Below, one piece after another: positions 2,235 through 62,544 of a DNA stretch of 64,000 nt. The stretch lies in the sequence record NC_048792.1. One strand, written 5' to 3'. A program made the translations under genes and the position numbers. The notes beneath the pieces are model-generated. The model saw nothing but the letters and a program-made list of their open reading frames with translations. It was not told where the DNA came from and made no database searches. The number at the start of each line of letters is the position of its first letter. Position 1 is the stretch's first letter.

Positions 2235-3104
2235 ATGTTAAGATCAAAAATCTTAGCGCGCTCTGCAGTCAGCAACGAAAGTTTCCTCGACTCCTTGAGA
2301 GCCAAAAAAGAACCAGAAACTAAAACGTTGCTGACGATCCCAGAGAAGACGATCGAAGCTACCGGGTATCTGGAAAAACACAAGAACGATGTCGAGAATA
2401 AACTCGGCTCCGCTGAGTGGGTAGCTGAGCATTCCGACATCTCAACGATCAATCCGCTCTGGAGCCTGGTTCTCCTTAATGGGGAACTCCCAGAGAACAT
2501 CGGTAAAGCGCTGACCGATAACTTCAAAGAAGCCATCGACTACGCCAAAGAAGGCGCGAAGGTACTCGAAGCTCGCAGTAAAGAGATCCGTGGTATCGAG
2601 AAGAAACTGGACGAAGACTACCAGGCCGATAAAATCGAGAACGCTTCTGCCGCTATCCAAAGCGCCTACTCGGACATCAAATGTCCACTGGAAGGCCTTA
2701 AGTTCGACAAACCGATGCTCGGCGGTTTCGAAGTAGAGATGGACGGCACCAAACGCAAATACAAATTCCATGACGGTAAAGTCACCCTGGAAGAACTGCC
2801 TGCTACCCAAGATATCGCCAAAGCGGTTAAAGTCGCTTTCGGTATTGTAGAAGAAGGTATGAAGTTCCTGAACGAATGGGACGACTACAAACTCTTCGAC
2901 GTTCCCGGTATCGATACTTCCGAAGGTATCTGGCGTGACCAATCCGTCAAGCACAACAACAAAAAGATCCGCGAGATCTCCGACTTCATCGATTCTGAAT
3001 GCCATGTAGAAATCGCTGAGCTGTTCTACGTATCTCCTCTGCGTGCTGCGATTGATTCTGCGGTTGCCTTTATCCGCCTGGTCAACGACTCGAGCAAGAA
3101 GTAA
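2235..3104 (+). CDS. putative processed head (virion) protein
   Basis: N-terminal AVSNE/SF resembles the [A/S]-x-E prohead-protease site of phiKZ-like head proteins. Strongly biased codons. Confidence 0.55.
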   Translation: MLRSKILARSAVSNESFLDSLRAKKEPETKTLLTIPEKTIEATGYLEKHKNDVENKLGSAEWVAEHSDISTINPLWSLVLLNGELPENIGKALTDNFKEAIDYAKEGAKVLEARSKEIRGIEKKLDEDYQADKIENASAAIQSAYSDIKCPLEGLKFDKPMLGGFEVEMDGTKRKYKFHDGKVTLEELPATQDIAKAVKVAFGIVEEGMKFLNEWDDYKLFDVPGIDTSEGIWRDQSVKHNNKKIREISDFIDSECHVEIAELFYVSPLRAAIDSAVAFIRLVNDSSKK

Positions 3105-41676: not shown

Positions 41677-43971
41677 ATGGCAAGACCATCGAAAAGCGCA
41701 CTGCGCGGCAACCTGACCAAAAATCTGGTTGAGAAAATCCACAATGCGGTAATGCGCAACGTAAACAGCCTGGGCGAAGGCTCTGCCGCTGGCGTGATGT
41801 CCGTATCTCTGGAAAGCTACAACGACCTGGGTGTTAACGCTGCTGACGTTGACAGCACCCTGGATAACCTGACCCAGGATCTGGCCGAAGCGCAAAGCGA
41901 TGCGGTTGGTGCAGTAAACGCAATCGAGCAAGGTCAGTCTGACGGCGCCATCGTTCATGGCGGCGAGTTCATCGAAGAGAACGGTAACAAAGTAGCTGTT
42001 GAAGCTGCCGCTGTTCTGGCGATGTCCTTCAAAAACCCAGGCGCTTACTACAAGGACGGTTATTCTAACCCGGCCTTCGAAAGCGGCGTTATCGTCCACA
42101 ACATGGTTTCCTCCGGTGCCAACGGCGCCATCGCGACTCTGCCGGAAAGCAGCCGTCCGTCGTTCGAATCCTTCGACGAAAAAGAAACCGAAAAATGGCG
42201 TGAACACAGCTACGCTATCAACATGATGGCCGCTAAACAGCACCCATTCGCTGAACTGTTCTACCGCACTCAGATCATCACTCCTGACCAAGCCGGCTTC
42301 GTAATGTCGATCCGCCGTAACATGGTCTGGGAAACCTACCAGGGTACTGGTCTGAAAGGCGACGCCGTTAAATTCCAAAAACGTAACATCCTGCAAGGTC
42401 TGCTGGACTACACCGTTCTGGAAAGCAACAGCACCGAACTGATCCCGTGCATCCACACCGGCGAGAACGATGACCAGTTCATCGACCCGACCCTGGTTGC
42501 GCCGCGCAAAGTTGTTCAGTCCAACGAAGAGTTCGAAACCAACTACCTGAAATTCGGTGTTGGCTTCAACCTGCCAATGCTGGCACAGACTCCTTCTCGT
42601 CTGCAGAAAGGTTCTCCAACCTTCTCCGACTCCCTGGACAGCCGTATCGCGCTGAAAGATCTGCTGGTAACCGTTTCCAAAGGCGGCACCAAAGAAAACG
42701 TGAACTTCTTCGTGAACCGCGACCAGTACGCCGCGTACACCGCAACTCGCGAATACAACTTCCGTCAAATGCAGCTGAAATTCCTGTCGACCGTTTCTGT
42801 TAACGCAGAAACCAAAACCGTTGAAGGCGCGGAATCCGCTAACCTGAAAGGTCTGATCGACGCTGGCTACAGCATGGAACTGGCTGTTGGTATCGACGGC
42901 GAAGTAAACGTTGAAACCGGCTCCGGCGAAACCTACGCACGTCCTCTGAAAATCGCTAAGATCTTCGACAAAGACGGCGTTGAAATCGCACTGTCCGACG
43001 CGCGTGTTGCCGCTCTGATCGCTGGCCTGACTTTCGAAGCTGCGGGTTACACCCTGGAAGCTCGTCTGACCAACATCAACCAACTGGAACTGGGCCTGGC
43101 AATCGACTCCGACGTGATGAAACACGGCTTCATGATCCCAACTCTGCCGCCGCTGGTTATCATCAAGCCGGCTCTGCAAGACGAAGAGAAAGTGTATCCG
43201 CGCATCGAAGCGCTGACCACTGCTTACCGTGTGCAGATGCGTAACAACGCAGTAACCACCCTGCTGAACCGCCGCGATACTCTGAAAGCCTACCTGGGCG
43301 TTGGCGTACCGCACCCGATCGAATCTAACCAAGGCCTGGAAGGTGTCGGCCAATACTACGTGCGTCCGTACTACATGGAAGCCGAAGTAGACATCCTGAA
43401 AGATCTGAACAACCTGACCTCGGCTGCTAAGCAGACTGACATTCAGGGTCTGTTGGTTAGCAAGATCAACGAAATGGTTTACACCGCTGACCAGCTGACT
43501 GGTTACACCGCTGCTCTGGAAGCTGCCTTCCCAGGCCGTACTCCTAAGCCGCACGTAGCTATCGGTACCGACATGCGTCTGCCGCAGTACCTGCAGATTC
43601 CTGGCGACGACCGTACCGTTGGTATTGGTTACGACTACACCATCGCTCGTATCTCCGACCTGCGCATGAAAGATCAGATCATCATGACCTTCGTGCTGCC
43701 GAACGTTGACGAGCCGCACCCGCTGCAGCACGGCGTACTGGGCCTGATTCCGGAATACCTGGTTAACTTCCAGATGATCCGTAACCAGCGCATCGGTAAC
43801 GAAATCCGTCTGACTCCGCGCTACCGTTACTTCAACTTCCTGCCGATCATGCTGTCTATCACCGTGAAAAACCTGGAAGAAGCAATTGCGGCGCGTACCG
43901 CTCAGGCTAACGATGTTAAAGTCGTTAACGCCGACGAGTTTGGTAAAGGCGGCGAAGCTCCGAAACCTTGA
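41677..43971 (+). CDS. major capsid protein (phiKZ gp120-like)
   Basis: 764 aa, strongest codon bias in the window, propeptide with SLE/AVE/AFE/PSFE sites, and QHPFAELFY...PDQAG motif. Located between DnaB and nvRNAP. Confidence 0.85.
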   Translation: MARPSKSALRGNLTKNLVEKIHNAVMRNVNSLGEGSAAGVMSVSLESYNDLGVNAADVDSTLDNLTQDLAEAQSDAVGAVNAIEQGQSDGAIVHGGEFIEENGNKVAVEAAAVLAMSFKNPGAYYKDGYSNPAFESGVIVHNMVSSGANGAIATLPESSRPSFESFDEKETEKWREHSYAINMMAAKQHPFAELFYRTQIITPDQAGFVMSIRRNMVWETYQGTGLKGDAVKFQKRNILQGLLDYTVLESNSTELIPCIHTGENDDQFIDPTLVAPRKVVQSNEEFETNYLKFGVGFNLPMLAQTPSRLQKGSPTFSDSLDSRIALKDLLVTVSKGGTKENVNFFVNRDQYAAYTATREYNFRQMQLKFLSTVSVNAETKTVEGAESANLKGLIDAGYSMELAVGIDGEVNVETGSGETYARPLKIAKIFDKDGVEIALSDARVAALIAGLTFEAAGYTLEARLTNINQLELGLAIDSDVMKHGFMIPTLPPLVIIKPALQDEEKVYPRIEALTTAYRVQMRNNAVTTLLNRRDTLKAYLGVGVPHPIESNQGLEGVGQYYVRPYYMEAEVDILKDLNNLTSAAKQTDIQGLLVSKINEMVYTADQLTGYTAALEAAFPGRTPKPHVAIGTDMRLPQYLQIPGDDRTVGIGYDYTIARISDLRMKDQIIMTFVLPNVDEPHPLQHGVLGLIPEYLVNFQMIRNQRIGNEIRLTPRYRYFNFLPIMLSITVKNLEEAIAARTAQANDVKVVNADEFGKGGEAPKP

Positions 43972-44022
43972 ACTCTCGGAGAGGCGTTTGAGAACCCTCT
44001 TAGCGGGTTCGATCCTGCCTAG
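43969..44022 (+). other. putative UGA read-through extension of the capsid (X-TLGEAFENPLSGFDPA)
   Basis: 16 in-frame codons after TGA-A, ending at TAG 44020-44022, before the terminator. The peptide matches a motif repeated in tail proteins. Confidence 0.6.
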
Positions 44023-44038: not shown

Positions 44039-44060
44039 CCAGGGACCTTCGGGTCCCTGG
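44039..44060 (+). terminator. rho-independent terminator of the capsid gene
   Basis: CCAGGGACC-TTCG-GGTCCCTGG followed by TTTATTTT. Confidence 0.85.
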
Positions 44061-49590: not shown

Positions 49591-52389
49591 TCAGGGTGGT
49601 GCCAGGTTGTCGTCTTCAGCGGCTTGGAACGGATCTTCGTTTGCACGGTCACCGCCAAATTCATCTTCACGACTACCAAAGTCATTACCACTCAGGTCAC
49701 CCTCGCCGAAGTCTTCGAACTCGTCTGAACCCGTATCGAATTCTGAGTCACTGGAGCTATTGTCGCTACCCCAATCACTACCGCCTCCGAAACCGCCTTG
49801 GTTAGCATTTTCAATTGCTTGACTCAAGTCAGGGTTAGTTTCCTTCGTAACTTCCAAACGGTTCTCACGGAGCTGACGAATAACTGCAGCGGTGTCACCC
49901 AGGTTATGTACCAGGTTAGCCATGTGCGCATTCAGCTCTTTAGAGAAGTCAATCGCAGGGTTATCTTCGCTACCTACACGAGTCAGTTCACTCAGACCAA
50001 AGTCCATCCCCGTCTTAGCCAGGTACTCACGTTTGAAGTAAGCGGCCACGTTAGCTTTGAGGTGATTGATCTTATCTTGGTCTTCGTCGCCCAGAGAAGG
50101 CCCGATGAGTTCTGGCGAGATGTAGTTCTCAACCATGTCATCAATCCATTGAGAGACTTTGTCGTATTCTTCTTTCTGGTTCTCGATCCGGTTAGATTCA
50201 GGACGAGGAAGTTCCAGATAAAGGACGCGGAAGAACTCTTCAATGGCATCGGTATATTGCAGTGAGTATGGGTTACCCATATCGTTGCAACGGTACTCTT
50301 CTGGGAGCTGGTCGTTGTGTTCACGGAAGATCTCTTGGATACGGCCAACCAACGTACCGTCAGACAAGGTATAGGACTTAACAAACTTCTTACCGTGTTT
50401 GCAAGTGTCATCCTGAATCATCATGATACGTTTTGCATAAAGCTGGTTGGTTGTCCAGCGGGAGATAGCAAAGTCTGCCTGGGTAGTCATGTCCACCATT
50501 TCTGGTGTTACGAACAGACCCATGTATTGCTGACGTTGCAACTCACGAGAGAACTCTGGATCGATTTGTTGACGTTGAGATTGGAACTCAGAAACATCGA
50601 CAGTCGTGTTAGGCATACGCGGGTTACCTTGGACTTCAATAACCACACCCATGGAACGAATAACACGGAACATCTCAGCAGCAGACGTTACGTCTGTTGG
50701 AGTACCGCCAGCCTGTTGACGCATGAATTCATCGATCATGACGTGATACGCTTTGTCCGGATCAGGGTCACGAGGGTCAATGTTCATGGTAACTTTAGTA
50801 CGGCCAACTGCGTTCTTAACCCCAGCCATGAAGTTAGCAAAAGTTGTCATTGCACGCAGAGCGGATACTTGCTTGATGTCATCCATCAAGGATTTACCCA
50901 TGCCGTTCTTGTCGTAGTCGTATGCAAAGTACGCAACGTTCTCAACAGGTACGAATACCATATGGGTACGTTGGTTAGCAAACTTACGGAACAGGAACAG
51001 ACGCATGATATCTTCGTTCCAGCCCAACTTAACGTTACGGCCGAGCAAACCGTTTTTAATACGGTTAAGTACGTTCTCTTCCAGAACCTGGTCGAAGATA
51101 CGCACACGCTCAGCGGCGTTAGTTTTATCGGCATCGTAGCAAAGACCGGAACCCAACATCTTAGTCTGTTGAATAAGTGAAGAGGTCTGGTTCATCTGAC
51201 TGTCGCCGTTAAGACCATTGTTACCGTTCTTAACAGCACGAGCGATCTCGTCGGTTACATCCAACGGGTGACCAAGTTCATCCAGGAGAATAATGTAACC
51301 TAAGTGGTTGCGAGGCTCACCTTTAGGGAAGCACGGAATACAAGATTCACTTGGTACTTTAATAACCAGCGGGTGACCAATAGAAGAACGAGAAGCTTCA
51401 GCCGCCGTTGTCATTACCTTAACACGTTCCATCGCACTACCGTTGTCGCGATAGAGGCTGTTGGCAAGGGTGCGGATCTCCTTGATATGACCGTTACCGC
51501 TGCTAAAGGACTCGTTGGAAATACGAGTAGTCGAACGGAAAGAACGGTTCATTCGCTTCTGGTTGATCCGGTCACGAACCTTACCTAAACCGAGAACTGC
51601 AATGTTATCGGTAATGGTACATGCGTCGTTGATACGCGTAGGCGTTTCACGGTCACCGGCTGGGTTCCAGAAGAAGTTTTCCATGCTAGGAGTACTGACT
51701 TCACGTCGCTTCTCTTTCTTGGCTTCTTCTTCAGTAAGACCTGGGTCGCCCAAGATACCTTTACCGGTATGTTTCAACGTACCGTCTTTAAACTGTGATG
51801 CAATGTGGGCCGCGTACATTTCGTCGGTCATTGCAGCAGATTCGTTAGAGACGCCGTTATAGGTACGGTCGTTGATGATATCGTCGATTACTGCTTCAGG
51901 AACGATAACGCCAATCCAAGCACCGTAGTCGAACAATGCTTCACCGATGATCTCCGGCAGTTTATCGCGGAGAGGGTAATAACCACCATCACCGAAATGT
52001 TCGCGGATAACTTCCGTGATTTCATTCAGTATAGTAGGACGAATTTCTGAATCTTCTGTTTTAAAGACCAGCTCGCCGTCGAACATGTCTACAGGAGAAA
52101 GGGTGGTGGAAATGATCATTTGTTTGATCAGTTTCAAATCGCTACTCAGCTGCAGGATAGTTTCTGCATCCAAGTTCTTCTGAGCACGGTTTCCGACGAT
52201 GTGGTCGAAAATAGTCTCATTATGTACCTTAACACCTTCACCCTGGCTATGATCACCGGTTAAATGGTCACGTACCATCTTCGTCATGATAGACGTGGCA
52301 GCAGGCGTATTTTCTAACCATTTCGTGGGTTTACTCCGAACACTCGTATCGGGACCACTACTGGTAAGAGTAGGTTTCTTCATTATCAT
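49591..52389 (-). CDS. portal protein (phiKZ gp129 / SPN3US gp81-like)
   Basis: 932 aa with IISTTLSPVDM, ALFDYGAW.G...PE and GKSLMDD. Internal SNE/SME sites. Divergent from the baseplate gene, as in phiKZ. Confidence 0.7.
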   Translation of the reverse strand: MIMKKPTLTSSGPDTSVRSKPTKWLENTPAATSIMTKMVRDHLTGDHSQGEGVKVHNETIFDHIVGNRAQKNLDAETILQLSSDLKLIKQMIISTTLSPVDMFDGELVFKTEDSEIRPTILNEITEVIREHFGDGGYYPLRDKLPEIIGEALFDYGAWIGVIVPEAVIDDIINDRTYNGVSNESAAMTDEMYAAHIASQFKDGTLKHTGKGILGDPGLTEEEAKKEKRREVSTPSMENFFWNPAGDRETPTRINDACTITDNIAVLGLGKVRDRINQKRMNRSFRSTTRISNESFSSGNGHIKEIRTLANSLYRDNGSAMERVKVMTTAAEASRSSIGHPLVIKVPSESCIPCFPKGEPRNHLGYIILLDELGHPLDVTDEIARAVKNGNNGLNGDSQMNQTSSLIQQTKMLGSGLCYDADKTNAAERVRIFDQVLEENVLNRIKNGLLGRNVKLGWNEDIMRLFLFRKFANQRTHMVFVPVENVAYFAYDYDKNGMGKSLMDDIKQVSALRAMTTFANFMAGVKNAVGRTKVTMNIDPRDPDPDKAYHVMIDEFMRQQAGGTPTDVTSAAEMFRVIRSMGVVIEVQGNPRMPNTTVDVSEFQSQRQQIDPEFSRELQRQQYMGLFVTPEMVDMTTQADFAISRWTTNQLYAKRIMMIQDDTCKHGKKFVKSYTLSDGTLVGRIQEIFREHNDQLPEEYRCNDMGNPYSLQYTDAIEEFFRVLYLELPRPESNRIENQKEEYDKVSQWIDDMVENYISPELIGPSLGDEDQDKINHLKANVAAYFKREYLAKTGMDFGLSELTRVGSEDNPAIDFSKELNAHMANLVHNLGDTAAVIRQLRENRLEVTKETNPDLSQAIENANQGGFGGGSDWGSDNSSSDSEFDTGSDEFEDFGEGDLSGNDFGSREDEFGGDRANEDPFQAAEDDNLAPP

Positions 52390-52442: not shown

Positions 52443-55013
52443 ATGGCGGATACCACGCAACGATTGTACGTTGATGGCGCAATGAGTCTAGCGCAGACGA
52501 TGACAATCAAGTTCAACGCCGGTGCGGTAGCGATCAACAATTATTTAACCGAAATAGGTTACACCGTTGACCCTAATGTTCCATCCACTTGGCGTTACTA
52601 CATGAACCTTGCTGGCAAGTATCATGTCAGTAATCAGCAAATGAAAGTGACCTCCTTGGACACCTTGGAGGAGATTGACTTCACATATGATAACCTCTTA
52701 ATCCACCGAGCTACTAAAGCAGCCTATAAGTACGGTTCCCGTTACTACAATGAACTTGTAGAACAATACCCAGAACAGGAATTGTTAATTCGGGGTGTTT
52801 TATGGCCAGTGGATATTGACAAGGCGATTGATGCCAAGGACTTCACTATCCTTTATTACGATAGTGACGAGGTTGATCCCAATGAAACGTATTTGATCCA
52901 GGATCTCCAAGAATGGATTTACCGGTTTACGTATCGTTGGTATCTAGTATTTGCTGCAGCTGTACAAAAATATTACCCGGCGACGTTTTTTGGGACTTTA
53001 TTTATTCACCTGGTTGGTGAGATAATCAGCATTCGTGAGAACTATTGCCGTACTCAATACGTGCATAGCTATCACCTTTGGGCGTACCTTGGTTCACACG
53101 GTCGTCTGAATGCGTACAAGGATTACGTCAACATTACCCAGGCGTTGTGGTTGTACCGTAATATTCGCTACATCGATAACCACGCCGGTAAAACGACTAC
53201 CTTTGATGATCTTATCCTTAATATCCTGACCGCCCGTAACATCCCGCTGACAGCTTATTTCCTGCGCCATAACTCGAAGGATGTTCCTGAGTCCATTCTC
53301 CCTGAAGGGGAAGTAGCTAAGGATCCTAAGAACTACCTGGCAGAGTCCGTTCAAGGTATCGAACGAATCTCAATTGGGGAGGCTCTGGATAACGAAGTTA
53401 ACTCGGCTAAGGATAACGATAAGTATCTGGCCAAGCAGAAAATCGATGTTCCTATTCGAGTCGCTAACGCCATTACCGGTGAGCTACCTACTAAGGTACT
53501 CGAGTCGGTCATGATTGACCGTTCAGATTCTGTACCGCACAAGTTTGTTGATACGTTAATGGGTGAGTGGATCTATCTGGCGACTGAAGGTCGTTACGTA
53601 GCGAACATCACTATCCCTAACCCGGCTACGCAAGAAGCCATGTCGATGACGGTAAGGGAAGCCTTGATCCTTTGGGTCTACTGTGCGATGCGTCAGTTTG
53701 AAATGGTACTGGAAGACGTCCCTGATCTGACAGCCTGGTTTGTGCAACGTCTAGCAGCTCCTGAGTTCTCTGAACTGCGTGGTGTGTGCGAACCTAAGTA
53801 TGTCAGTGAAGCGGCTATCCTGATGGCTCTGACTGAGCATACTCCGGTGTCTACTATTATCTCGACTGAAGCGTTCTACAACACTGTAGCTCAGATTCAA
53901 AGTAACATTAACGCCCATCGTGTCATGTACACGCGTCAGCAAGACTTCCGTGCTCGTGGCCAAATGGAAGTGATGACCAATCGCTTTTACATCAACAAGA
54001 AATGTCAGTTGTCAGCCACACCGATTAAATACGCAGACTGGTTCCACACCAAGAACTGGGATATGGAGTTGAGTTCTCCAGAAGCGTATTCCGATTTCTG
54101 TTTCCAGCTAATAGAAGTTGCAACGGGTGCTAACCTGCGCTCAACGATATCGGTGTCCGATGTACACAGCGCCATGATAGCGATCATGACTCAGCTGTCC
54201 AGTTACTCTGTACAGTACGTCCACAAAACTAACGCATCTCCAAACATCATTGTTGATAACTTGGCGATTCGTTTCGGTGGCATCGAGTCTCGTCCTAGCG
54301 CCGACTTTAAAATTGACCAACGCGTTGAAATCATTAACCAGTACCAACGTGGTAAACTCTCTCCTGACAAGTCTGCATTTGAAGGGATTGAGATTGGCTC
54401 GAAGTATATTCATGCACCGCACTTCTACCGTGTGTTCTCGTCCGTGAACTTCCTGCCAGATACCCATGTTGCTACTCGTCACCAGATTGAGATCGCTGAG
54501 GTTAGGTTCAAAGGTTCGCTTGCTAAAGATATCGGTCTTGAGATCAGTAAGCATGATCTTGATGGCCTGTGGCTTTATCTGGCAACCGCTCGTCCAATTA
54601 ACGAAGTCATCACTAACCCAAGGCTACCTGGGTTGTGGGTACGCGTACCTCGTGAAGATGAGTACTTACCTAACGAGATTACCAAAACCGATATTGAAGG
54701 GCTGTGGACGAATGTTATCCCTGGCCCAGAGAAATTGGTCATTGGCAATAAACCACTCCCAGGTCTGTGGTTAGAGCCTATCGTTCCTTACGAGTTGGAA
54801 GACTTTAAAGAACGTCTCGAAGGTTTCGATCCACCTGAACCATTTAAACCAACTACGTTGACTGATGGTTTCGATGAGAATCTGGGTGGCTTCGTTGGGT
54901 ACATTGAACCTGAGTTTGACCTCTTCAATATAGAGGAAGAACTTCCTGGCTTCGATTCGCCTGATAGCGAACCAAAAGCACCTTACGATTTCTCTGCTTT
55001 GTTTGGCGAGTAA
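52443..55013 (+). CDS. baseplate wedge protein (phiKZ gp130-like) with C-terminal LxG[LF] repeats
   Basis: WRYYMNLAGKYH and LWLYRNIRYIDNHAGK motifs. Seven C-terminal repeats. Confidence 0.65.
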   Translation: MADTTQRLYVDGAMSLAQTMTIKFNAGAVAINNYLTEIGYTVDPNVPSTWRYYMNLAGKYHVSNQQMKVTSLDTLEEIDFTYDNLLIHRATKAAYKYGSRYYNELVEQYPEQELLIRGVLWPVDIDKAIDAKDFTILYYDSDEVDPNETYLIQDLQEWIYRFTYRWYLVFAAAVQKYYPATFFGTLFIHLVGEIISIRENYCRTQYVHSYHLWAYLGSHGRLNAYKDYVNITQALWLYRNIRYIDNHAGKTTTFDDLILNILTARNIPLTAYFLRHNSKDVPESILPEGEVAKDPKNYLAESVQGIERISIGEALDNEVNSAKDNDKYLAKQKIDVPIRVANAITGELPTKVLESVMIDRSDSVPHKFVDTLMGEWIYLATEGRYVANITIPNPATQEAMSMTVREALILWVYCAMRQFEMVLEDVPDLTAWFVQRLAAPEFSELRGVCEPKYVSEAAILMALTEHTPVSTIISTEAFYNTVAQIQSNINAHRVMYTRQQDFRARGQMEVMTNRFYINKKCQLSATPIKYADWFHTKNWDMELSSPEAYSDFCFQLIEVATGANLRSTISVSDVHSAMIAIMTQLSSYSVQYVHKTNASPNIIVDNLAIRFGGIESRPSADFKIDQRVEIINQYQRGKLSPDKSAFEGIEIGSKYIHAPHFYRVFSSVNFLPDTHVATRHQIEIAEVRFKGSLAKDIGLEISKHDLDGLWLYLATARPINEVITNPRLPGLWVRVPREDEYLPNEITKTDIEGLWTNVIPGPEKLVIGNKPLPGLWLEPIVPYELEDFKERLEGFDPPEPFKPTTLTDGFDENLGGFVGYIEPEFDLFNIEEELPGFDSPDSEPKAPYDFSALFGE
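54510..54965 (+). repeat. 7 degenerate peptide repeats L-x-G-[LF]
   Basis: DLDGLW, RLPGLW, DIEGLW, PLPGLW, RLEGFDPP, NLGGFVG, ELPGFDSP. Confidence 0.8.
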
Positions 55014-55079
55014 TCTTAACGACCAAGGATGGTTGTTATGTTAATATTTCAGCTAATGTAACGCCTATCGGAGTCAACA

Positions 55080-55919
55080 ATGGCAAACGCGAATTACTAC
55101 AATAAGCCCACTAACCGATTAGTCTTTGACTTGATCAAAGAAGCTAACCCGGAAGCGGACTTCTCAGAAGATCAAGTAAGGTTAACGAACTTTACCCAGA
55201 ACACCAATGGCGACCCGTTACGTAACACCGCAGGTATTCTGAAAGCAATCCCTGGCATGGGCCGTGAAGGTCAAGAGAACCTGACCTGGAACCGTCCTGC
55301 ACTGAACGAGATCTTTAAAGAGATCAGCGTTTACTGTTCCCCTAACGGTAAGTTCAAGAAATCTGACTTACTGAAAGAAATCAACAGTAACTATAACTTC
55401 CAGCTGGACGCCGGCGATATTTACGACGGCGTGTTGAACCTGTCAACTCTACCGACCAAAACGGTTATCGTGGTTCGACCTACCTGTCCTGCTTTTACTG
55501 GTCAGTTAGAGATTACCATTGGTGATCCTAAGATCGCTCTGGAGACGGTTATTCGTAACCCTGACCTGGATGGCCTGGCTTACCCTACCAACCAGTCTGA
55601 GAAGATCCAAGGTCCTCTGTACATGTATGCCAATGACTACACGTACGATGCCACTGGTCTTCAGCAGTTTGGTTACGGCGATCCTATCCAAGGCGAACTC
55701 CTGGAAAGCCTCAACCGTAAATCGCCAGACACCTGGGTACTGAAACCTACCCCTGCTCCGTGGAACGCTAACGGTGCTGACGTATGGTACAATGGCCCGA
55801 CTGCTCAGGCTCCGGTATACGTGAACACTTCGTATCAGCGCTGCTTGGTTATCCACCTGGATAAAGAGTATTGCTCTAACGTCGCTGGTCACTTGATCCT
55901 GCATTACAACATGCCATAA
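55080..55919 (+). CDS. tail/baseplate-associated paralog-family protein
   Basis: N-terminal LVFDLIKEAN...RNT...G.....NR domain ending ETVIRNPDLDGLAYP, then a C-terminal domain like the phiKZ gp131 family. Confidence 0.6.
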   Translation: MANANYYNKPTNRLVFDLIKEANPEADFSEDQVRLTNFTQNTNGDPLRNTAGILKAIPGMGREGQENLTWNRPALNEIFKEISVYCSPNGKFKKSDLLKEINSNYNFQLDAGDIYDGVLNLSTLPTKTVIVVRPTCPAFTGQLEITIGDPKIALETVIRNPDLDGLAYPTNQSEKIQGPLYMYANDYTYDATGLQQFGYGDPIQGELLESLNRKSPDTWVLKPTPAPWNANGADVWYNGPTAQAPVYVNTSYQRCLVIHLDKEYCSNVAGHLILHYNMP

Positions 55920-55924
55920 TAGAA

Positions 55925-55947
55925 GCCTGCTGCAAAATGCAGCAGGC
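55925..55947 (+). terminator. hairpin terminator, followed by TATG
   Basis: GCCTGCTGC-AAAAT-GCAGCAGGC. Confidence 0.65.
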
Positions 55948-56055
55948 CTTATGCTTTATTGTTCGCTTAGTATGGAAGGCATGTTCTTCTTTAGAACGTT
56001 TTGCCACCATCCATTTCCCTGGATGTTTTAAAAAACCTGTTTAAGGATTTATCCG

Positions 56056-56589
56056 ATGGCACGTATCGCGTTTAACCCGGCAAACTCTGCCGATGATGAA
56101 TTCACTCGTCTCCTGGTAAATGGTACTATCATCCCAGAGCTGAAAGCAATTAAACTGACCACCGATTACACCGTCACCACCCCTGCCGCCGCTAACACCG
56201 GTGAGAAAGATGGTAACACCGTTATCGGCCTGACCCCTGCGGCTGGCAGTAAATTGTTGAAAGGCGACGCGCGTGAGTTCTACTACGATCGTCTGAGCAT
56301 CGCTTCTGAACTGACCCGTAAAGCAGTTAACCTGAAGTCTGCTGATGCACTGACCCCGGCTAACCGTGACGCGTTCGCCCTGACCTGCGTAAAAGCAGTT
56401 TGGGACAAATTCGTTGCTGCTGACGTCGTGTTCAAAGAAGACAAAACTGAAGGCGAAGTTGTAGCGTACGTCTACACTATCAAAGCCGACAACAAAGTCT
56501 TCAACGGCGAATTCACTATCACTTCCGGCGACCAGACTCTCCAGTCCTTCAGCGAGAACCTGGGCGGCTTTGACGCACCGGCTGCGTAA
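56056..56589 (+). CDS. abundant virion paralog-family protein
   Basis: GNTVIGL...GDAREFYYDRL single domain ending TLQSFSENLGGFDAPAA. Highly optimised codons. Confidence 0.6.
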   Translation: MARIAFNPANSADDEFTRLLVNGTIIPELKAIKLTTDYTVTTPAAANTGEKDGNTVIGLTPAAGSKLLKGDAREFYYDRLSIASELTRKAVNLKSADALTPANRDAFALTCVKAVWDKFVAADVVFKEDKTEGEVVAYVYTIKADNKVFNGEFTITSGDQTLQSFSENLGGFDAPAA

Positions 56590-56600
56590 TAGTTGACCGA

Positions 56601-56627
56601 AGAGTCGGAGGGATGACCTCCGGCTCT
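56601..56627 (+). terminator. hairpin terminator, followed by TATG
   Basis: AGAGTCGGAGG-GATGA-CCTCCGGCTCT followed by TATTTT. Confidence 0.75.
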
Positions 56628-56691
56628 TATTTTATGTCACCTTCCCCTCATTTAGCTTTCCACTAGAGAGCTATCGCTTTAAGGATTTAAA

Positions 56692-57630
56692 ATGAGCGCA
56701 AGTACTAATACCAACTTGATTACGCGCACTGTTCTTAGTGGGATGCTGCAAACGTGTTTGCTGGCAGGTATCCCGTTAACAGTTCTGGATTATACGACGC
56801 TCAACCAGCGTCTGGGTATTAACGAAGATGCTAAGCTGGCATCTAACGAAATGCCTACCTTCGGCTACTGGTGCATCGGTGACAAAGGTCACTGGGTTGT
56901 CCCTACTTCCGATGGCGAAGTTATTATCGAACCAGCTGAACATACCGCCGGTGACTTCGCCCCGTTCAACATGATTCCGTTTGTCATGCGTGAAGAGTCT
57001 AACGACCTGTCTGTAGAAGAGCGTAAGAAGTACGGCCTTCGTAAATCAGAGAACCGCAACGGGATCAACTATTTCTCTTACTACGCCAAGGCCATCGACC
57101 TGACTGGTAAGAAGCCGCGTATGGAACGTACTACCGTGAAAGACGGTGTTGCGACCACTACTGAATATACGCCGAACAACTCCAACCTGTACCCTGAGCG
57201 TAAAACTCTGACGACCAACGAAGCCGTCACTACCAACTCCGATACTCTGACCGTTTCGTTGACTACTGATGTACTGTTCGACGACAACGATGTTAAAGAG
57301 CTGAACAACGTATCTCGCATCCTGTACGGTAACGAGAAGCGTGCAATCATCTCTGAGATCGCATTGGTATCAGCATTCAAACGTGTTGTACAGGCGCCTG
57401 GCCCTGGCGGCGGTGCTATCTCTATCACTGAAGCTATCTGTGCCCAGGTACTGACCTTCTTGTCTACTTATCGTCAGATGTCCTTCGATAACCGCGGTTT
57501 CGTTATTACTCTGGAAATGGGTGCCAACGAACCGATGATGACATCCGACGCGGTAGGTACCAGCTCAGGCCGCGACGCCGTTCAAAACGCACGTCAGTTG
57601 TTCTCTGCGAATATCGCACCACGCGCTTAA
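56692..57630 (+). CDS. virion structural (baseplate/tail) protein
   Basis: TTLNQRLGI, YWCIGDKGH and IISEIALVSA motifs typical of the phiKZ-like gene after gp131. Confidence 0.55.
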   Translation: MSASTNTNLITRTVLSGMLQTCLLAGIPLTVLDYTTLNQRLGINEDAKLASNEMPTFGYWCIGDKGHWVVPTSDGEVIIEPAEHTAGDFAPFNMIPFVMREESNDLSVEERKKYGLRKSENRNGINYFSYYAKAIDLTGKKPRMERTTVKDGVATTTEYTPNNSNLYPERKTLTTNEAVTTNSDTLTVSLTTDVLFDDNDVKELNNVSRILYGNEKRAIISEIALVSAFKRVVQAPGPGGGAISITEAICAQVLTFLSTYRQMSFDNRGFVITLEMGANEPMMTSDAVGTSSGRDAVQNARQLFSANIAPRA

Positions 57631-57646
57631 AACGAAGGAGCGGTAA

Positions 57647-58795
57647 ATGAGTACTATCTTTGGCCACGATACCATCAAGGCTGAAGTTATCGATTTAATC
57701 AATAAGAAGAATGCTCAGTTTGGTGCAGACTTTACCGAGGACAACCTCGAAGTCACGTGGCTCAGCTACGATGCACTAGACCGTCGTCAAACGATGATGA
57801 CGAAAGATCTTTCTGGTCGATACTTTGGTTTACGTGATATCCGCTTCTTCAAACGCGATTACGATCTCCTCTTTAAAGGGATCGACGTAAAGATCCAGGT
57901 AGGTTCAGGCTACAACAACCGCGCGGTGCTCAAAGAGCTTTCTCGTGCATACGGGTTACCTCCATTCGAAGATTACGACTTTGCTCCAGGTCTACTGGAC
58001 ATGTCTATCGAAGTAGGTGACCACGAGCAATTGATCGAATGGCCATTTGCTGACTCCAGCTGGGGTTGGACAGGGACTTGTCGATTCAAGCTCCGTAACA
58101 TGAAGACCTCGCTGGAAACGCTTATTCCAGACGGTACATTGGATCGATTCCATCCAGAAGAGCTGAAAGGCGTCTTCTACGAATTGGTCAACGGTACGTT
58201 GAGTGGATTGGATTACCCAGAATACTTCGACCTTGGTAAGATCATTACGGTCACCGATCTCGAAGGTTTGGAATACCCAGACGATATCGACTTGGGTGTT
58301 ATTATCCATACCACAGATCTGGAAGGTCTGGAATATCCGCCGATGACTGATATCAGCAAGTTCCAAACTAGCGATCTCCAGGGCTTGGAATATCCTCCTG
58401 CTTACGACTTGACTAAACTCAATGTCTTTGCATTGGCCGGTCTGGATTATCCGAGCGGTACTGGCGCAGGTCAAACTTCTGCGTACAGCACGACCTACCC
58501 GCTGGACTTCTCTGATTACCAACGTGCAATCCGTACTTATCGTTTAGGCGATACGATCACGGACGTTAACTTGGTGAACGTCATTGTTAGCATGATCCAG
58601 TCTAACTGGACTAAGCTGCAGGGTGAGACTAACAAGTCTAACCTCTTTAACTCCTTCTTGAATGCGACCATCCAGAGCATTGAACAGAAACGTTCGATCC
58701 ATGGTTGGACTATTTCGGTTGGCGTTAAGTTGAGTTCTCAACGCGTACTTCGCGGCAATGCCGTGCTGCGTTACGACATCCAATCTGAATATTAA
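57647..58795 (+). CDS. tail paralog-family protein with tandem LEGLEYP repeats
   Basis: VIDLINKKN N-terminal domain followed by about six ~19-aa repeats. Confidence 0.65.
   Translation: MSTIFGHDTIKAEVIDLINKKNAQFGADFTEDNLEVTWLSYDALDRRQTMMTKDLSGRYFGLRDIRFFKRDYDLLFKGIDVKIQVGSGYNNRAVLKELSRAYGLPPFEDYDFAPGLLDMSIEVGDHEQLIEWPFADSSWGWTGTCRFKLRNMKTSLETLIPDGTLDRFHPEELKGVFYELVNGTLSGLDYPEYFDLGKIITVTDLEGLEYPDDIDLGVIIHTTDLEGLEYPPMTDISKFQTSDLQGLEYPPAYDLTKLNVFALAGLDYPSGTGAGQTSAYSTTYPLDFSDYQRAIRTYRLGDTITDVNLVNVIVSMIQSNWTKLQGETNKSNLFNSFLNATIQSIEQKRSIHGWTISVGVKLSSQRVLRGNAVLRYDIQSEY
58100..58455 (+). repeat. tandem ~57-nt peptide repeats (L..I..TDLEGLEYP)
   Basis: TLSGLDYP, DLEGLEYP twice, DLQGLEYP, ALAGLDYP, plus a degenerate TLDRFHP. 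Confidence 0.85.
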
Positions 58796-58809
58796 TGACG
58801 ATAATTAAA

Positions 58810-58831
58810 AGTAGGGGCTTCGGCCTCTACT
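58810..58831 (+). terminator. rho-independent terminator
   Basis: AGTAGGGGC-TTCG-GCCTCTACT followed by TTTTTATG. Confidence 0.8.
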
Positions 58832-58878
58832 TTTTTATGCTTACTTATTTTTTTATATTAAATCTTCCAGAGGGTCAT

Positions 58879-59523
58879 ATGGGTGATACAAAATTCAGGG
58901 TTATCGGCATCGACCCAGGGAGCCGTTGTTTCGGTTTGTCAGTAATTGAATACGACTTAATCAACATGACCGAAACGCTGGTTTACGCAACTACTTTCAA
59001 ACCAGACCCTATTCTTCATGAACGTCATCCGTACATGATCCTCGGGGAGCGCGGCGCACGTCACCGTCTTTGTGAGGACTTTGTCGTAGAGTCTCTCAAA
59101 ACGTTCAAGCCACATCTCGTCGTCTGCGAATCTGCCTTCCTTAAATTCAAAGCGGTTAATGCCTACCGTTCGCTGATCGAAGGTATTGTCACCATTCGCC
59201 GTGCCTTACAACGTTACGACGACACGATGCATTTACTTACCGTTGAACCAAGTGCTGCTAAGAAAGCGGTAGGTGCACGTAACTCGGATAGTCCGGATAA
59301 AAAGTTAATCGTTCGCTTGGCAATAGAGCGAATGAAAACCATGATCAAGAATGTTGCTATTTCTGATCTGGATGAGCACGCAGTCGATGCGGTTGCAATT
59401 GGCCACTGGGCTATGGATAAATGGCTTAGTGAAATGAAATGTATTATTGAAGGAGTGGATGCATGTTCTTCGTCTTCGAAGGAATGGATGGGGCAGGAAA
59501 AACGACTTGTCGGGATGGTGTAG
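58879..59523 (+). CDS. ruvC: RuvC-like Holliday junction resolvase
   Basis: VIGIDPGS, VVCESAF, EPSAAKKAVG and DEHAVDAVAIG catalytic motifs. GAGG SD before the ATG at 58879. Confidence 0.85.
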   Translation: MGDTKFRVIGIDPGSRCFGLSVIEYDLINMTETLVYATTFKPDPILHERHPYMILGERGARHRLCEDFVVESLKTFKPHLVVCESAFLKFKAVNAYRSLIEGIVTIRRALQRYDDTMHLLTVEPSAAKKAVGARNSDSPDKKLIVRLAIERMKTMIKNVAISDLDEHAVDAVAIGHWAMDKWLSEMKCIIEGVDACSSSSKEWMGQEKRLVGMV

Positions 59524-60689: not shown

Positions 60690-61297
60690 TATTTTGCATC
60701 GTGGGTTTTCTTTGCCTGATCTAAAGCTTCGCGAACGTATTGCTGATACTTCTCAAACGCTCCTTTATACTGCACCAGAGCTTCTTGAGCTGCACCTAGA
60801 TACACAGCGCATTGATCTGCTCGATAGGCTTCCCCTTTAAGAAATTGCACAGACGATTCTGGAAGTTTGGCGTAATAGGTTCCATTACTTCCGGCTGGAC
60901 TTCCGGTAACTTGACTTCCTTTACCTTTATCTCCAGCGTTTCCGTCGGCGCCTTTGGTGGCGTCAACGCGCAACCAGACATCGCCAATACTGTCAAGCTG
61001 AGTGCGCTGCTTATCAATATTCGTTTTAGCATCATTAAGGCCTTTATTGAGTTTATCGAAACCGTCATCCATTGACTTACTAAGACCATTCAGTTTATCG
61101 TCCAAACCGGCTTGAAGGCCTTTCTGCAATTCAGAGAGCATTGAGTTACGTGCATCAGTGAGTCGCTTCTCTACTTGTGCGTTGATGTATTGATTAACCT
61201 TAACTACAATGTAGGTAGAGGCAATCGCAATCAACGCAATGTAAATGTAGAGTTTATACTGGCCAAGGAATGCGGAGATCAACCCTTTAGGATTCAT
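60689..61297 (-). CDS. i-spanin (Rz-like)
   Basis: N-terminal TM, coiled coil, WLRVDA, and C-terminal EAYRADQC..L.AAQ..Y pattern typical of Rz. Confidence 0.75.
   Translation of the reverse strand: MNPKGLISAFLGQYKLYIYIALIAIASTYIVVKVNQYINAQVEKRLTDARNSMLSELQKGLQAGLDDKLNGLSKSMDDGFDKLNKGLNDAKTNIDKQRTQLDSIGDVWLRVDATKGADGNAGDKGKGSQVTGSPAGSNGTYYAKLPESSVQFLKGEAYRADQCAVYLGAAQEALVQYKGAFEKYQQYVREALDQAKKTHDAK
60796..61032 (-). CDS. o-spanin (Rz1-like lipoprotein), embedded in the i-spanin gene
   Basis: MLKRILISSALSLTVLAMSG/C lipobox, Pro-rich mature part, extra Cys residues, AAAGG SD. Alternate frame entirely within the i-spanin gene. Confidence 0.75.
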   Translation of the reverse strand: MLKRILISSALSLTVLAMSGCALTPPKAPTETLEIKVKEVKLPEVQPEVMEPITPNFQNRLCNFLKGKPIEQINALCI

Positions 61298-62544
61298 AGC
61301 ACGCTCACTCGTTTAATAAGTAAGAAACCAGCCCGAGAACGCCACGCACGTTTATAGCCATAACGCTGGTCACGGATAACCGTAGCATCGGTGACAGAAG
61401 TACTGTGGCGGATATAGTTGTAGTAGTCGTGACGAGGCACGCCGATCGCCCAGAAGCCATCACGTTCTTCTACGTTGTACTCAACCAAGAAACCACTGCC
61501 CAATTGAAGCGGTAGGTCAGGTAACTCTTGCCCAGGTGTCAAGTACATACCGGGCAATTCAGTTTCCTTAATCTTCAAGTTCTCAACCGTGATGTTATTG
61601 GTTTGGATAATGAAGAGGAATGACTGAGACAATTTCAGGAATGCTTTAATTGAATCGTCAGAGGTGAATTGACTGGTGACGAATTGATCTGGTGAGTTTG
61701 CATCTTTAGACAGAGGAATCGAACTCAAATCCAATGTACCATAAGTCGTATAGAAGATGTCAGGGAAATCCAACAACTGCGTGTTGAACTTAACGCGACG
61801 ATCGCCTACGATTGACAGAGTGCCGTTCAACAGATGCATTTGACCTGCTACAACGATACCTACCGTCTTACCGATGAGGTCTTCCGGAGTATCAATAAAG
61901 AAGCCACGGGACAGAGGTAAATCTTTACCGCCACCTCGGATCATTTCATCCGTGATGTTGTATGTCTTAATTTCGGCAATACTACTGAAGTCAAGGATAC
62001 CCACTCGGTTGTCGTTGTACTTCGCTGCTGCCGCGCCTGCCCCTAATAAGGCAATGCCGCCAGTAGGTAAAGTATCTGCCCGGAAAATCAAACCGTTAGT
62101 TGTAAACAAGGCGTTACGGACGATTCTTTCATAGTCGTCAATACCATCTTTTTTAAGCATGATATCGACACGCTGGTCGGGAAGAAGGTTTTCACTTTCA
62201 GCAAAGCTAAAGTTAATGCCAGTGGTTTTCATTTCAAAGGCATTAGCAAACATAGCTCTGACGTAGTGCTCACCTTTCATCCCCGTAGGATCATCTTCGT
62301 AGAGATTCAGTGGGGAAGTGATTTCCAACCAACGTTCTATTTCAGCCGGTGAAGTTCTTAATTGAATGGGAAGCTGGTACAAGTCCAACCAACCTGTAAT
62401 ATTTTTATCGGTGTCGAACAACTGTACCATGCAAAGGTGATACAGTTGGAAAATGTCATTCAAACGCATCCCTTTTAGGTTAACGTTCTGCCAGTCACCG
62501 TAATTCCCCTTAGGGATAGCTTGCGCGGTCACTATCTGGTACAT
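61294..62544 (-). CDS. virion structural protein (phiKZ gp139-like)
   Basis: 416 aa with LFTTNGLIF and LSQSFLFII motifs. AGGAG SD. ATGA-coupled to the spanin. Confidence 0.55.
   Translation of the reverse strand: MYQIVTAQAIPKGNYGDWQNVNLKGMRLNDIFQLYHLCMVQLFDTDKNITGWLDLYQLPIQLRTSPAEIERWLEITSPLNLYEDDPTGMKGEHYVRAMFANAFEMKTTGINFSFAESENLLPDQRVDIMLKKDGIDDYERIVRNALFTTNGLIFRADTLPTGGIALLGAGAAAAKYNDNRVGILDFSSIAEIKTYNITDEMIRGGGKDLPLSRGFFIDTPEDLIGKTVGIVVAGQMHLLNGTLSIVGDRRVKFNTQLLDFPDIFYTTYGTLDLSSIPLSKDANSPDQFVTSQFTSDDSIKAFLKLSQSFLFIIQTNNITVENLKIKETELPGMYLTPGQELPDLPLQLGSGFLVEYNVEERDGFWAIGVPRHDYYNYIRHSTSVTDATVIRDQRYGYKRAWRSRAGFLLIKRVSVL

Follow-up and report, generated by a model that had tools for sequence, protein, structure and literature searches.

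Introduction

The closest described system is the filament model of phage Goslar, in which AlphaFold 3 docks the linker of a DUF7941 protein (together with its C-domain, if present) on the N-domain of another protomer, purified gp22 forms filaments, and the phiKZ gp126-gp127 dimer was fitted into baseplate density (bioRxiv 10.64898/2026.04.21.720040). A filament cloud anchored at six sites was proposed there, and the authors' estimate of about 2,500 DUF7941 subunits per virion on six anchors implies micrometre-long filaments. With regard to phiKZ, a band of five gp139 dimers starts at the wedge protein gp128, of which each heterotrimeric wedge holds one, and ends at the DUF7941 protein gp127 (PMC13250141, from which the wedge role of gp128 is also taken); the spoke, which lies between inner and outer baseplate, is made of dimers of gp139 or of its Goslar counterpart gp32. 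Here we analysed a stretch of 64,000 nucleotides (record NC_048792.1; hereafter the window), which is 100% identical to Serratia phage Moabite, a phiKZ-like nucleus-forming jumbo phage of the genus Moabitevirus with a genome of 273,933 bp. It encodes a short linear motif, with the stable core L-x-G-[LF], that recurs in the baseplate wedge protein, in the neighboring DUF7941 proteins and in a conserved in-frame extension behind the TGA stop codon of the major capsid gene.

The Moabite locus shares with the Goslar model the protein family, the gene neighborhood, the idea of a linker on the next N-domain and the place at the peripheral baseplate. The gene order is identical (Goslar gp36 to gp31), and the position of the motif is that of the disordered linker of DUF7941 proteins in the Goslar preprint. 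On the other hand, the Goslar model assumes six anchor sites, to which arrays of the Moabite type and the capsid extension would add many more. Homologues of all three phiKZ spoke proteins (gp128, gp139 and gp127) are also encoded side by side in Moabite; unlike phiKZ, the Moabite wedge protein has an extra tail of ~240 residues predicted to be disordered. The docking of a linker on an N-domain has already been proposed for Goslar, and that proposal is independent support for the idea. A text search of the Goslar preprint (10.64898/2026.04.21.720040) found no sequence motif, multi-copy linkers or capsid read-through, and gp35, the Goslar wedge protein, is named there three times and its tail never. 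In our literature search we found no further paper on DUF7941 in phages and nothing published on wedge-tail arrays, the capsid extension or its extended product. The wedge-tail arrays, the DUF7941 protein with many motif copies and, above all, the conserved capsid TGA extension appear to be new.

Two other systems offer a likeness. The A1 protein of Qbeta arises by read-through of a leaky UGA, and T7 10B arises by a frameshift at the end of 10A. In both, as proposed here, a fixed minority of coat subunits gains a C-terminal extension by recoding at the end of the coat gene; Moabite differs in that it is a double-stranded DNA (dsDNA) jumbo phage, that the extension of 15-50 residues resembles a docking peptide and not a folded domain, and that the recoding is deduced from comparative sequence alone. 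In donor-strand complementation of chaperone-usher pili, a short segment of one subunit is given to the domain of the next subunit. Polymerization by segment donation is the common point, which for Moabite is an analogy only: unlike pili, its system has no chaperone, and the motif follows the domain on its C-terminal side, recurs in arrays and is carried by unrelated proteins.

Distribution of the motif

The capsid gene and the motif carriers of the wedge/DUF7941 cluster, ~8 kb downstream of it, are as follows.

41677..43971, + strand: major capsid protein gene, 764 codons, stop codon TGA followed by A; annotated in the record as major head protein
43972..44022, + strand: in-frame extension after the capsid TGA, 16 sense codons with one motif copy, then TAG
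52443..55013, + strand: baseplate wedge protein of 856 residues, homologue of phiKZ gp128 and Goslar gp35, by PDB and PHROG matches
54525..54965, + strand: motif array in the wedge tail, seven strict copies and one degenerate, by scan and inspection
55080..55919, + strand: full-length DUF7941 protein, phiKZ gp127-like, with N-domain, linker motif and C-domain (PF25613, PDB 9xqd_0)
56056..56589, + strand: short, probable DUF7941 protein, Goslar gp23-like, with N-domain and a tail with terminal motif (PHROG 1037, local hidden Markov model)
57647..58795, + strand: DUF7941 protein with expanded linker, with N-domain, five strict motifs and one degenerate, and C-domain (PF25613)

An initial annotation of this DNA had reported the motif in the wedge, in the open reading frames (ORFs) starting at 55080, 56056 and 57647, and behind the capsid stop. 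A strict scan for [LI]-x-G-[LF], together with inspection, gave the same copy counts: the array in the wedge, a single copy in ORF 55080 (55536-55586), a single copy that forms the C-terminus of ORF 56056 (56536-56586), the five strict and one degenerate copies of ORF 57647 with a 20-residue period (58109-58456), and one copy in the capsid extension (43972-44019), which lies outside the stretch given in that annotation (52443-58795). Its labels of baseplate and capsid proteins were likewise right, though the full regular expression it had written fits only two copies. The stable core is L-x-G-[LF], after which come a residue of aromatic or acidic type and Pro; a further hydrophobic position lies ~7 residues upstream. 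Moabite has three subtypes (G-L-W, G-L-x-Y-P and G-F-D); in the wedge tail the first four copies are of the G-L-W type and the later ones of the G-F type.

A position matrix was trained on the 14 strict copies and scored against the 68,569 fifteen-mers of all six frames. The training copies took the top 14 places, and the capsid extension, which was not in the training set, ranked 10 among the remaining fifteen-mers. Tandem Repeats Finder found no DNA-level tandem repeats, which rules out recent DNA duplications and indicates that the repeats are maintained at the protein level.

The best motif-like fifteen-mer outside the five carriers (2694-2738, matrix score 15.8) lies in ORF 2235-3104 on the + strand, a different kind of ORF distant from the structural cluster, and is probably due to chance. 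Two weak ones (scores 10.6 and 9.2) in the homologue of phiKZ gp130 (61294-62544, - strand) look like chance as well; phiKZ gp130 links the star lobes and carries fiber sites.

The wedge protein matches PDB 9xqs_C (2.7e-110), PDB 11lx_Bh (2.4e-117) and PHROG 3222 (3.8e-244), with gp128-type homology over its full length. In a set of 150 sequences chosen to represent 1,364 wedge relatives, the tail exceeds the body 30-fold in density of the strict motif, whose copy number ranges from 0 to about 12. Compared with the body, the tail is enriched threefold in proline and twofold in glutamate and glycine, and the spacing of the motifs is irregular. Elsewhere, the wedge tail has three copies in Goslar gp35, four in PCH45 and two in PhiEaH1, and the motif is also found in the linkers of Goslar gp22, gp23, gp31, gp33 and gp34 and of the paralogues in PCH45 and PhiEaH1. 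The motif is thus confirmed as real and reaches well past this window: it is found in several protein families, within segments predicted to be disordered, and is conserved.

Longer and more regular arrays were seen in the wedge proteins of two uncultured phages, with ~10-12 G-F-D-Y copies in one (our L040, 9001-11838) and six L-D-G-L-W copies in the other (our L042, 4189-6651).

Predicted disorder and conservation of the arrays

Monomers were modelled with AlphaFold2 (AF2), ORF 57647 from a 19-sequence alignment and the wedge protein from 69 sequences. In ORF 57647, the N-domain and the C-domain are confident, and the array between them (residues 154-274) has a predicted local distance difference test score (pLDDT) of 31-48 and no regular secondary structure. 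The wedge model has a confident helical body (pLDDT ~90) to about residue 610-615, and its tail residues 620-856 (237 residues) have pLDDT <50 and are predicted to be disordered. Intramolecular folding of the motif, which the initial annotation had named as evidence against a docking peptide, is therefore not what these models predict.

In the family of ORF 57647 (19 homologues, 46-82% identity), the commonest residue accounts on average for a share of 0.92 at positions of the motif core and of 0.56 in the rest of the array. Similarly, the motif cores of the wedge tails are the invariant columns in relatives at 50-82% identity. A conserved core within a poorly conserved segment of predicted disorder is what defines a short linear motif. 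Because the arrays are predicted to be disordered and the cores are nevertheless near-invariant, they carry the signature of a binding peptide.

Two points count against this conclusion. The motif copy number is the same in all 19 homologues of ORF 57647, which would equally suit a structural repeat, and predicted disorder of a monomer is compatible with folding upon oligomerization. Oligomeric fiber shafts are often left disordered by monomer predictions. The repeats could then be structural units that fold only in an oligomer, such as a fiber shaft or a beta-solenoid, and not ligands of a separate domain; the 20-residue period of ORF 57647 would also fit this explanation. We consider it quite improbable, because the motif also occurs singly at a protein C-terminus and after the capsid stop, where a repeat fold is impossible, because each heterotrimeric wedge contains a single wedge protein (PMC13250141), and because the motifs of the wedge tail are separated by irregular, Pro-rich spacers and the AF2 arrays are without secondary structure.

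A conserved in-frame extension of the capsid gene

Our strongest result concerns the capsid extension. The capsid ORF has sequence matches in PDB (8bfl, 11bt and 8y6v), and the ends of its relatives were sampled in 29 chimallivirus lineages, mainly from GenBank phage records with a few loci from viral or metagenome contigs. A search turned up 196 chimallivirus capsid genes. In all 16 lineages whose capsid gene ends in TGA, the frame continues for 15-50 conserved codons, whereas in all 13 lineages ending in TAA the next in-frame stop follows within 10 codons. A Fisher test of TGA against extension gave 2e-7 (14 versus 11 lineages), a value that overstates the case since the lineages are related and the test exaggerates their independence.

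An L-x-G-[FL]-type motif is present in 11 of the 16 extensions, namely in three Moabitevirus species, PhiEaH1, PCH45 and two uncultured relatives, Goslar, pEa_SNUABM_54, FLC9 and, weakly, RP12. The remaining five, all from Pseudomonas phages (phiKZ, PhiPA3, Phabio, Noxifer and Psa21), share a different repeat. Moreover, RTH11 (Xanthomonas) and pEa_SNUABM_48 (Erwinia) have a TAA stop, and in their capsid protein the motif forms the native C-terminus behind a short linker, so that every capsid subunit would bear it. The motif-like capsid C-terminus of Yong MS31 aligns with the conserved last helix and was left out of the count.

The extensions of the Pseudomonas phages (five genera) are 26-30 codons long and show the pattern basic-x-L-E-D-G, roughly, two or three times (phiKZ, our L018, 14883-14960). 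No other occurrence of this pattern was found in 29 kb of phiKZ around the capsid gene.

UGA is the leakiest stop codon in enterobacteria, particularly with A or C as the next base and proline as the last residue. The base after the TGA is A or C in 13 of the 16 lineages and never T, and the Moabite capsid protein has a C-terminal proline before the TGA. For the remaining structural genes of the cluster the stop is TAA, with T or A as the next base; TGA closes 11 of the 49 long ORFs of the window.

The extension evolves as a protein. Between Moabite and 2050HW, 15 of its 48 bases differ (31%), and the next 78 bases are 96% identical; the 10 codon changes comprise six synonymous and four non-synonymous ones in the capsid frame, compared with 0-1 synonymous in the other frames. 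Between PCH45 and a metagenomic relative, an extension of 48-50 codons is kept with 11 synonymous changes and in-frame indels. The peptide is also maintained across genera whose DNA can no longer be aligned. There is no start codon within the extension. Comparative analysis thus points to protein-level selection on the extension: behind a putatively leaky stop stands an open in-frame sequence whose conservation is that of a protein.

A divergence hot spot covers the extension and the capsid codons just before it (43930-44022, compared with 2050HW, our L002), which suggests fast evolution or exchange of this short module.

It may be argued that the stretch behind the stop is not usefully translated and that it resembles the motif as a relic or through a constraint on the RNA. 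In the window, 14 of the 49 long ORFs have at least 16 open codons after the stop by chance, and by itself the Moabite extension reaches a modest matrix score. However, the synonymous bias is found in the capsid frame only, the peptide outlives the alignability of its DNA, the linkage of TGA to the extension is perfect (16 versus 13 lineages), and two phages have native C-terminal versions. Rfam gave only a chance match and no family for the extension, its local fold is not unusual (z-score -0.88), and ARAGORN found no transfer RNA in the window; these results rule out a tRNA-like or other RNA element. We therefore hold the untranslated alternative as distinctly improbable.

In Goslar, 10 of 16 residues of the extension agree with the C-terminal tail of gp23, and this tail is the only match of at least seven residues in a 44 kb six-frame translation. 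Since only 30 of 48 bases agree, the extension is not a recent copy of the gp23 tail. Goslar gp23 is the most abundant DUF7941 protein, with about 2,140 copies per virion. Similarly, the Moabite extension and the tail of the gp23-like ORF 56056 are of the same G-F-D subtype. The motif behind the capsid stop, which the initial annotation had pointed out, thus holds up as a peptide that is conserved in relatives and mimics a DUF7941 tail.

The C-terminal arm of the phiKZ capsid protein is resolved to its final residue and touches the outer-surface protein gp244 at the pentons, and the Goslar capsid protein with a C-terminal green fluorescent protein localizes like capsids in infected cells. Given this contact and this fusion, the extension could be exposed. 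We infer that read-through of the capsid TGA occurs and that the extended subunit is incorporated into the capsid. A fuller reading is that in nucleus-forming jumbo phages conserved UGA read-through gives a small share of the about 1,600 capsid subunits a docking peptide that copies the tail of the most abundant filament protein, that the fiber cloud has anchors both on the baseplate wedges and on the head, and that lineages tune this by a leaky stop, by a tight stop without the peptide or by a permanent peptide. We regard this fuller reading as possible, with chances a little short of even.

The DUF7941 domain and the proposed docking

The N-terminal domain of ~150 residues that the initial annotation saw in ORFs 55080, 56056 and 57647 is real and corresponds to Pfam DUF7941 (PF25613), and the motif directly follows it. 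ORF 55080 scored 271.9 bits across its full length and ORF 57647 79.3 bits in two stretches, both above the curated cut-off of 27 bits; the PDB match of ORF 55080 is 9xqd_0. ORF 56056 scored 21.2 bits, below the cut-off, and matches PHROG 1037 at 2e-6; a local hidden Markov model (HMM), in whose training set the protein itself was included, gave 3.9e-34. As its layout of N-domain and tail is that of Goslar gp23 and its tail is conserved in relatives, it is probably a divergent, N-domain-only member of DUF7941. The local HMM recovers the N-domain in all three proteins and found no further DUF7941 N-domain in the window. The AF2 model of ORF 57647 matches 9xqd_0, the N-terminal domain of phiKZ gp127 from the outer baseplate structure, with a probability of 1.00 and a template modelling (TM) score of 0.62 over 148 columns, and this is its only significant fold match.

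We propose that the motif is a docking peptide, or plug, on flexible disordered segments of peripheral-baseplate virion proteins, that the DUF7941 N-domain is the socket, and that capsid read-through adds further plugs. A canonical DUF7941 protein, with one socket and one plug, would form head-to-tail chains, and ORF 57647, with one socket and about six plugs, would be a branching hub. The wedge protein, with about eight plugs on its 237-residue tail, would anchor chains to the six wedges. At the head, a minority of ribosomes would pass the weak capsid TGA and add a 16-residue plug of the subtype of the gp23-like DUF7941 tail; the fraction of capsid subunits with this plug would recruit the same filaments to the head, and the leaky stop would make the number of plugs tunable. 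We give this scheme slightly better than even chances. Within it, the N-domain would be the receptor for every motif subtype, and the three subtypes and three N-domain paralogues of Moabite might, as a speculation, form a specificity code.

In addition to the fixed copy number and the limits of monomer prediction discussed above, several observations weigh against the scheme. The L-x-G-[LF] motif is absent from phiKZ gp128 and gp127, which have the same architecture, and the phiKZ capsid extension bears its own repeat in place of the Moabite motif; the form seen in Moabite is thus not a universal one. In the two uncultured phages with long arrays, the wedge-tail subtype differs from that of the adjacent DUF7941 linkers. 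Matching of subtypes thus did not reveal the receptor of the wedge-tail copies, which may bind another partner, for example the DUF7208 spoke. The gene for this protein lies within the motif cluster.

56692..57630, + strand: DUF7208 protein, homologue of phiKZ gp139 and Goslar gp32, without motif copy (PF23838)

ORF 56692 scored 350 bits for PF23838 and matches PDB 9xpg_A at 1.1e-53. The receptor could thus be another shared baseplate component, for which the gp139-like DUF7208 spoke dimer is the best candidate, with the wedge tail stapled along the spoke. The phiKZ gp139 band touches gp128 and gp127, the counterparts of motif carriers (PMC13250141), the subtypes of wedge tail and adjacent linkers may differ, and the highest copy numbers (up to about 10-12) come near the ten subunits of the spoke. 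However, copy numbers of 0, 2, 3, 4 and 8 occur in phages with common spoke proteins, and the spoke consists of five dimers in both phiKZ and Goslar. Moreover, phiKZ has the gp139 band but no motif, the capsid extension and its likeness to the gp23 tail would be left unexplained, and published predictions, made for Goslar and phiKZ proteins, place the linker on the DUF7941 N-domain. We regard a DUF7208 receptor as unlikely.

Taken as a whole, the interpretation in the initial annotation is partly supported: that the domain binds the peptide of another subunit is in line with the AlphaFold 3 docking of the Goslar linkers and with the gp22 filaments, and for the wedge-tail copies this assignment is less certain, given the subtype mismatch in two phages. 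Its donor-strand mechanism is an analogy, and a role of copy number in setting stoichiometry is a conjecture.

Neighboring features

Two further features flank the capsid extension and the motif cluster.

44039..44060, + strand: intrinsic terminator 3' of the capsid extension, predicted here and also annotated in the record
49591..52389, - strand: portal protein, homologue of phiKZ gp129, divergent neighbor of the motif cluster

The C-terminal tail of the portal protein (49591-49760, - strand) has ~55 residues, a strongly acidic character and a high content of Gly, Phe, Asp and Glu. At the other end of the cluster, the ATG of the longest form of a RuvC-like ORF overlaps with the ORF 57647 stop codon (58795-58879, + strand), and the start in the record is 58879. 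A strong terminator (58807-58834) lies inside the stretch between these two candidate starts, and the shorter gene is likely the correct form.

Implications

In the phiKZ and Goslar maps, resolution is poor at the outermost parts of the chimallivirus virion, and a docking peptide would provide a wiring diagram of them at the level of sequence. Moreover, it would multiply the possible anchor points, through the wedge arrays, the multi-plug hub and the read-through form of the capsid protein. If true, the conserved read-through of the capsid gene would be recoding of a kind that is rare among tailed dsDNA phages. Finally, the motif could help to find proteins of the virion periphery in the genomes of jumbo phages, where most genes are unannotated.

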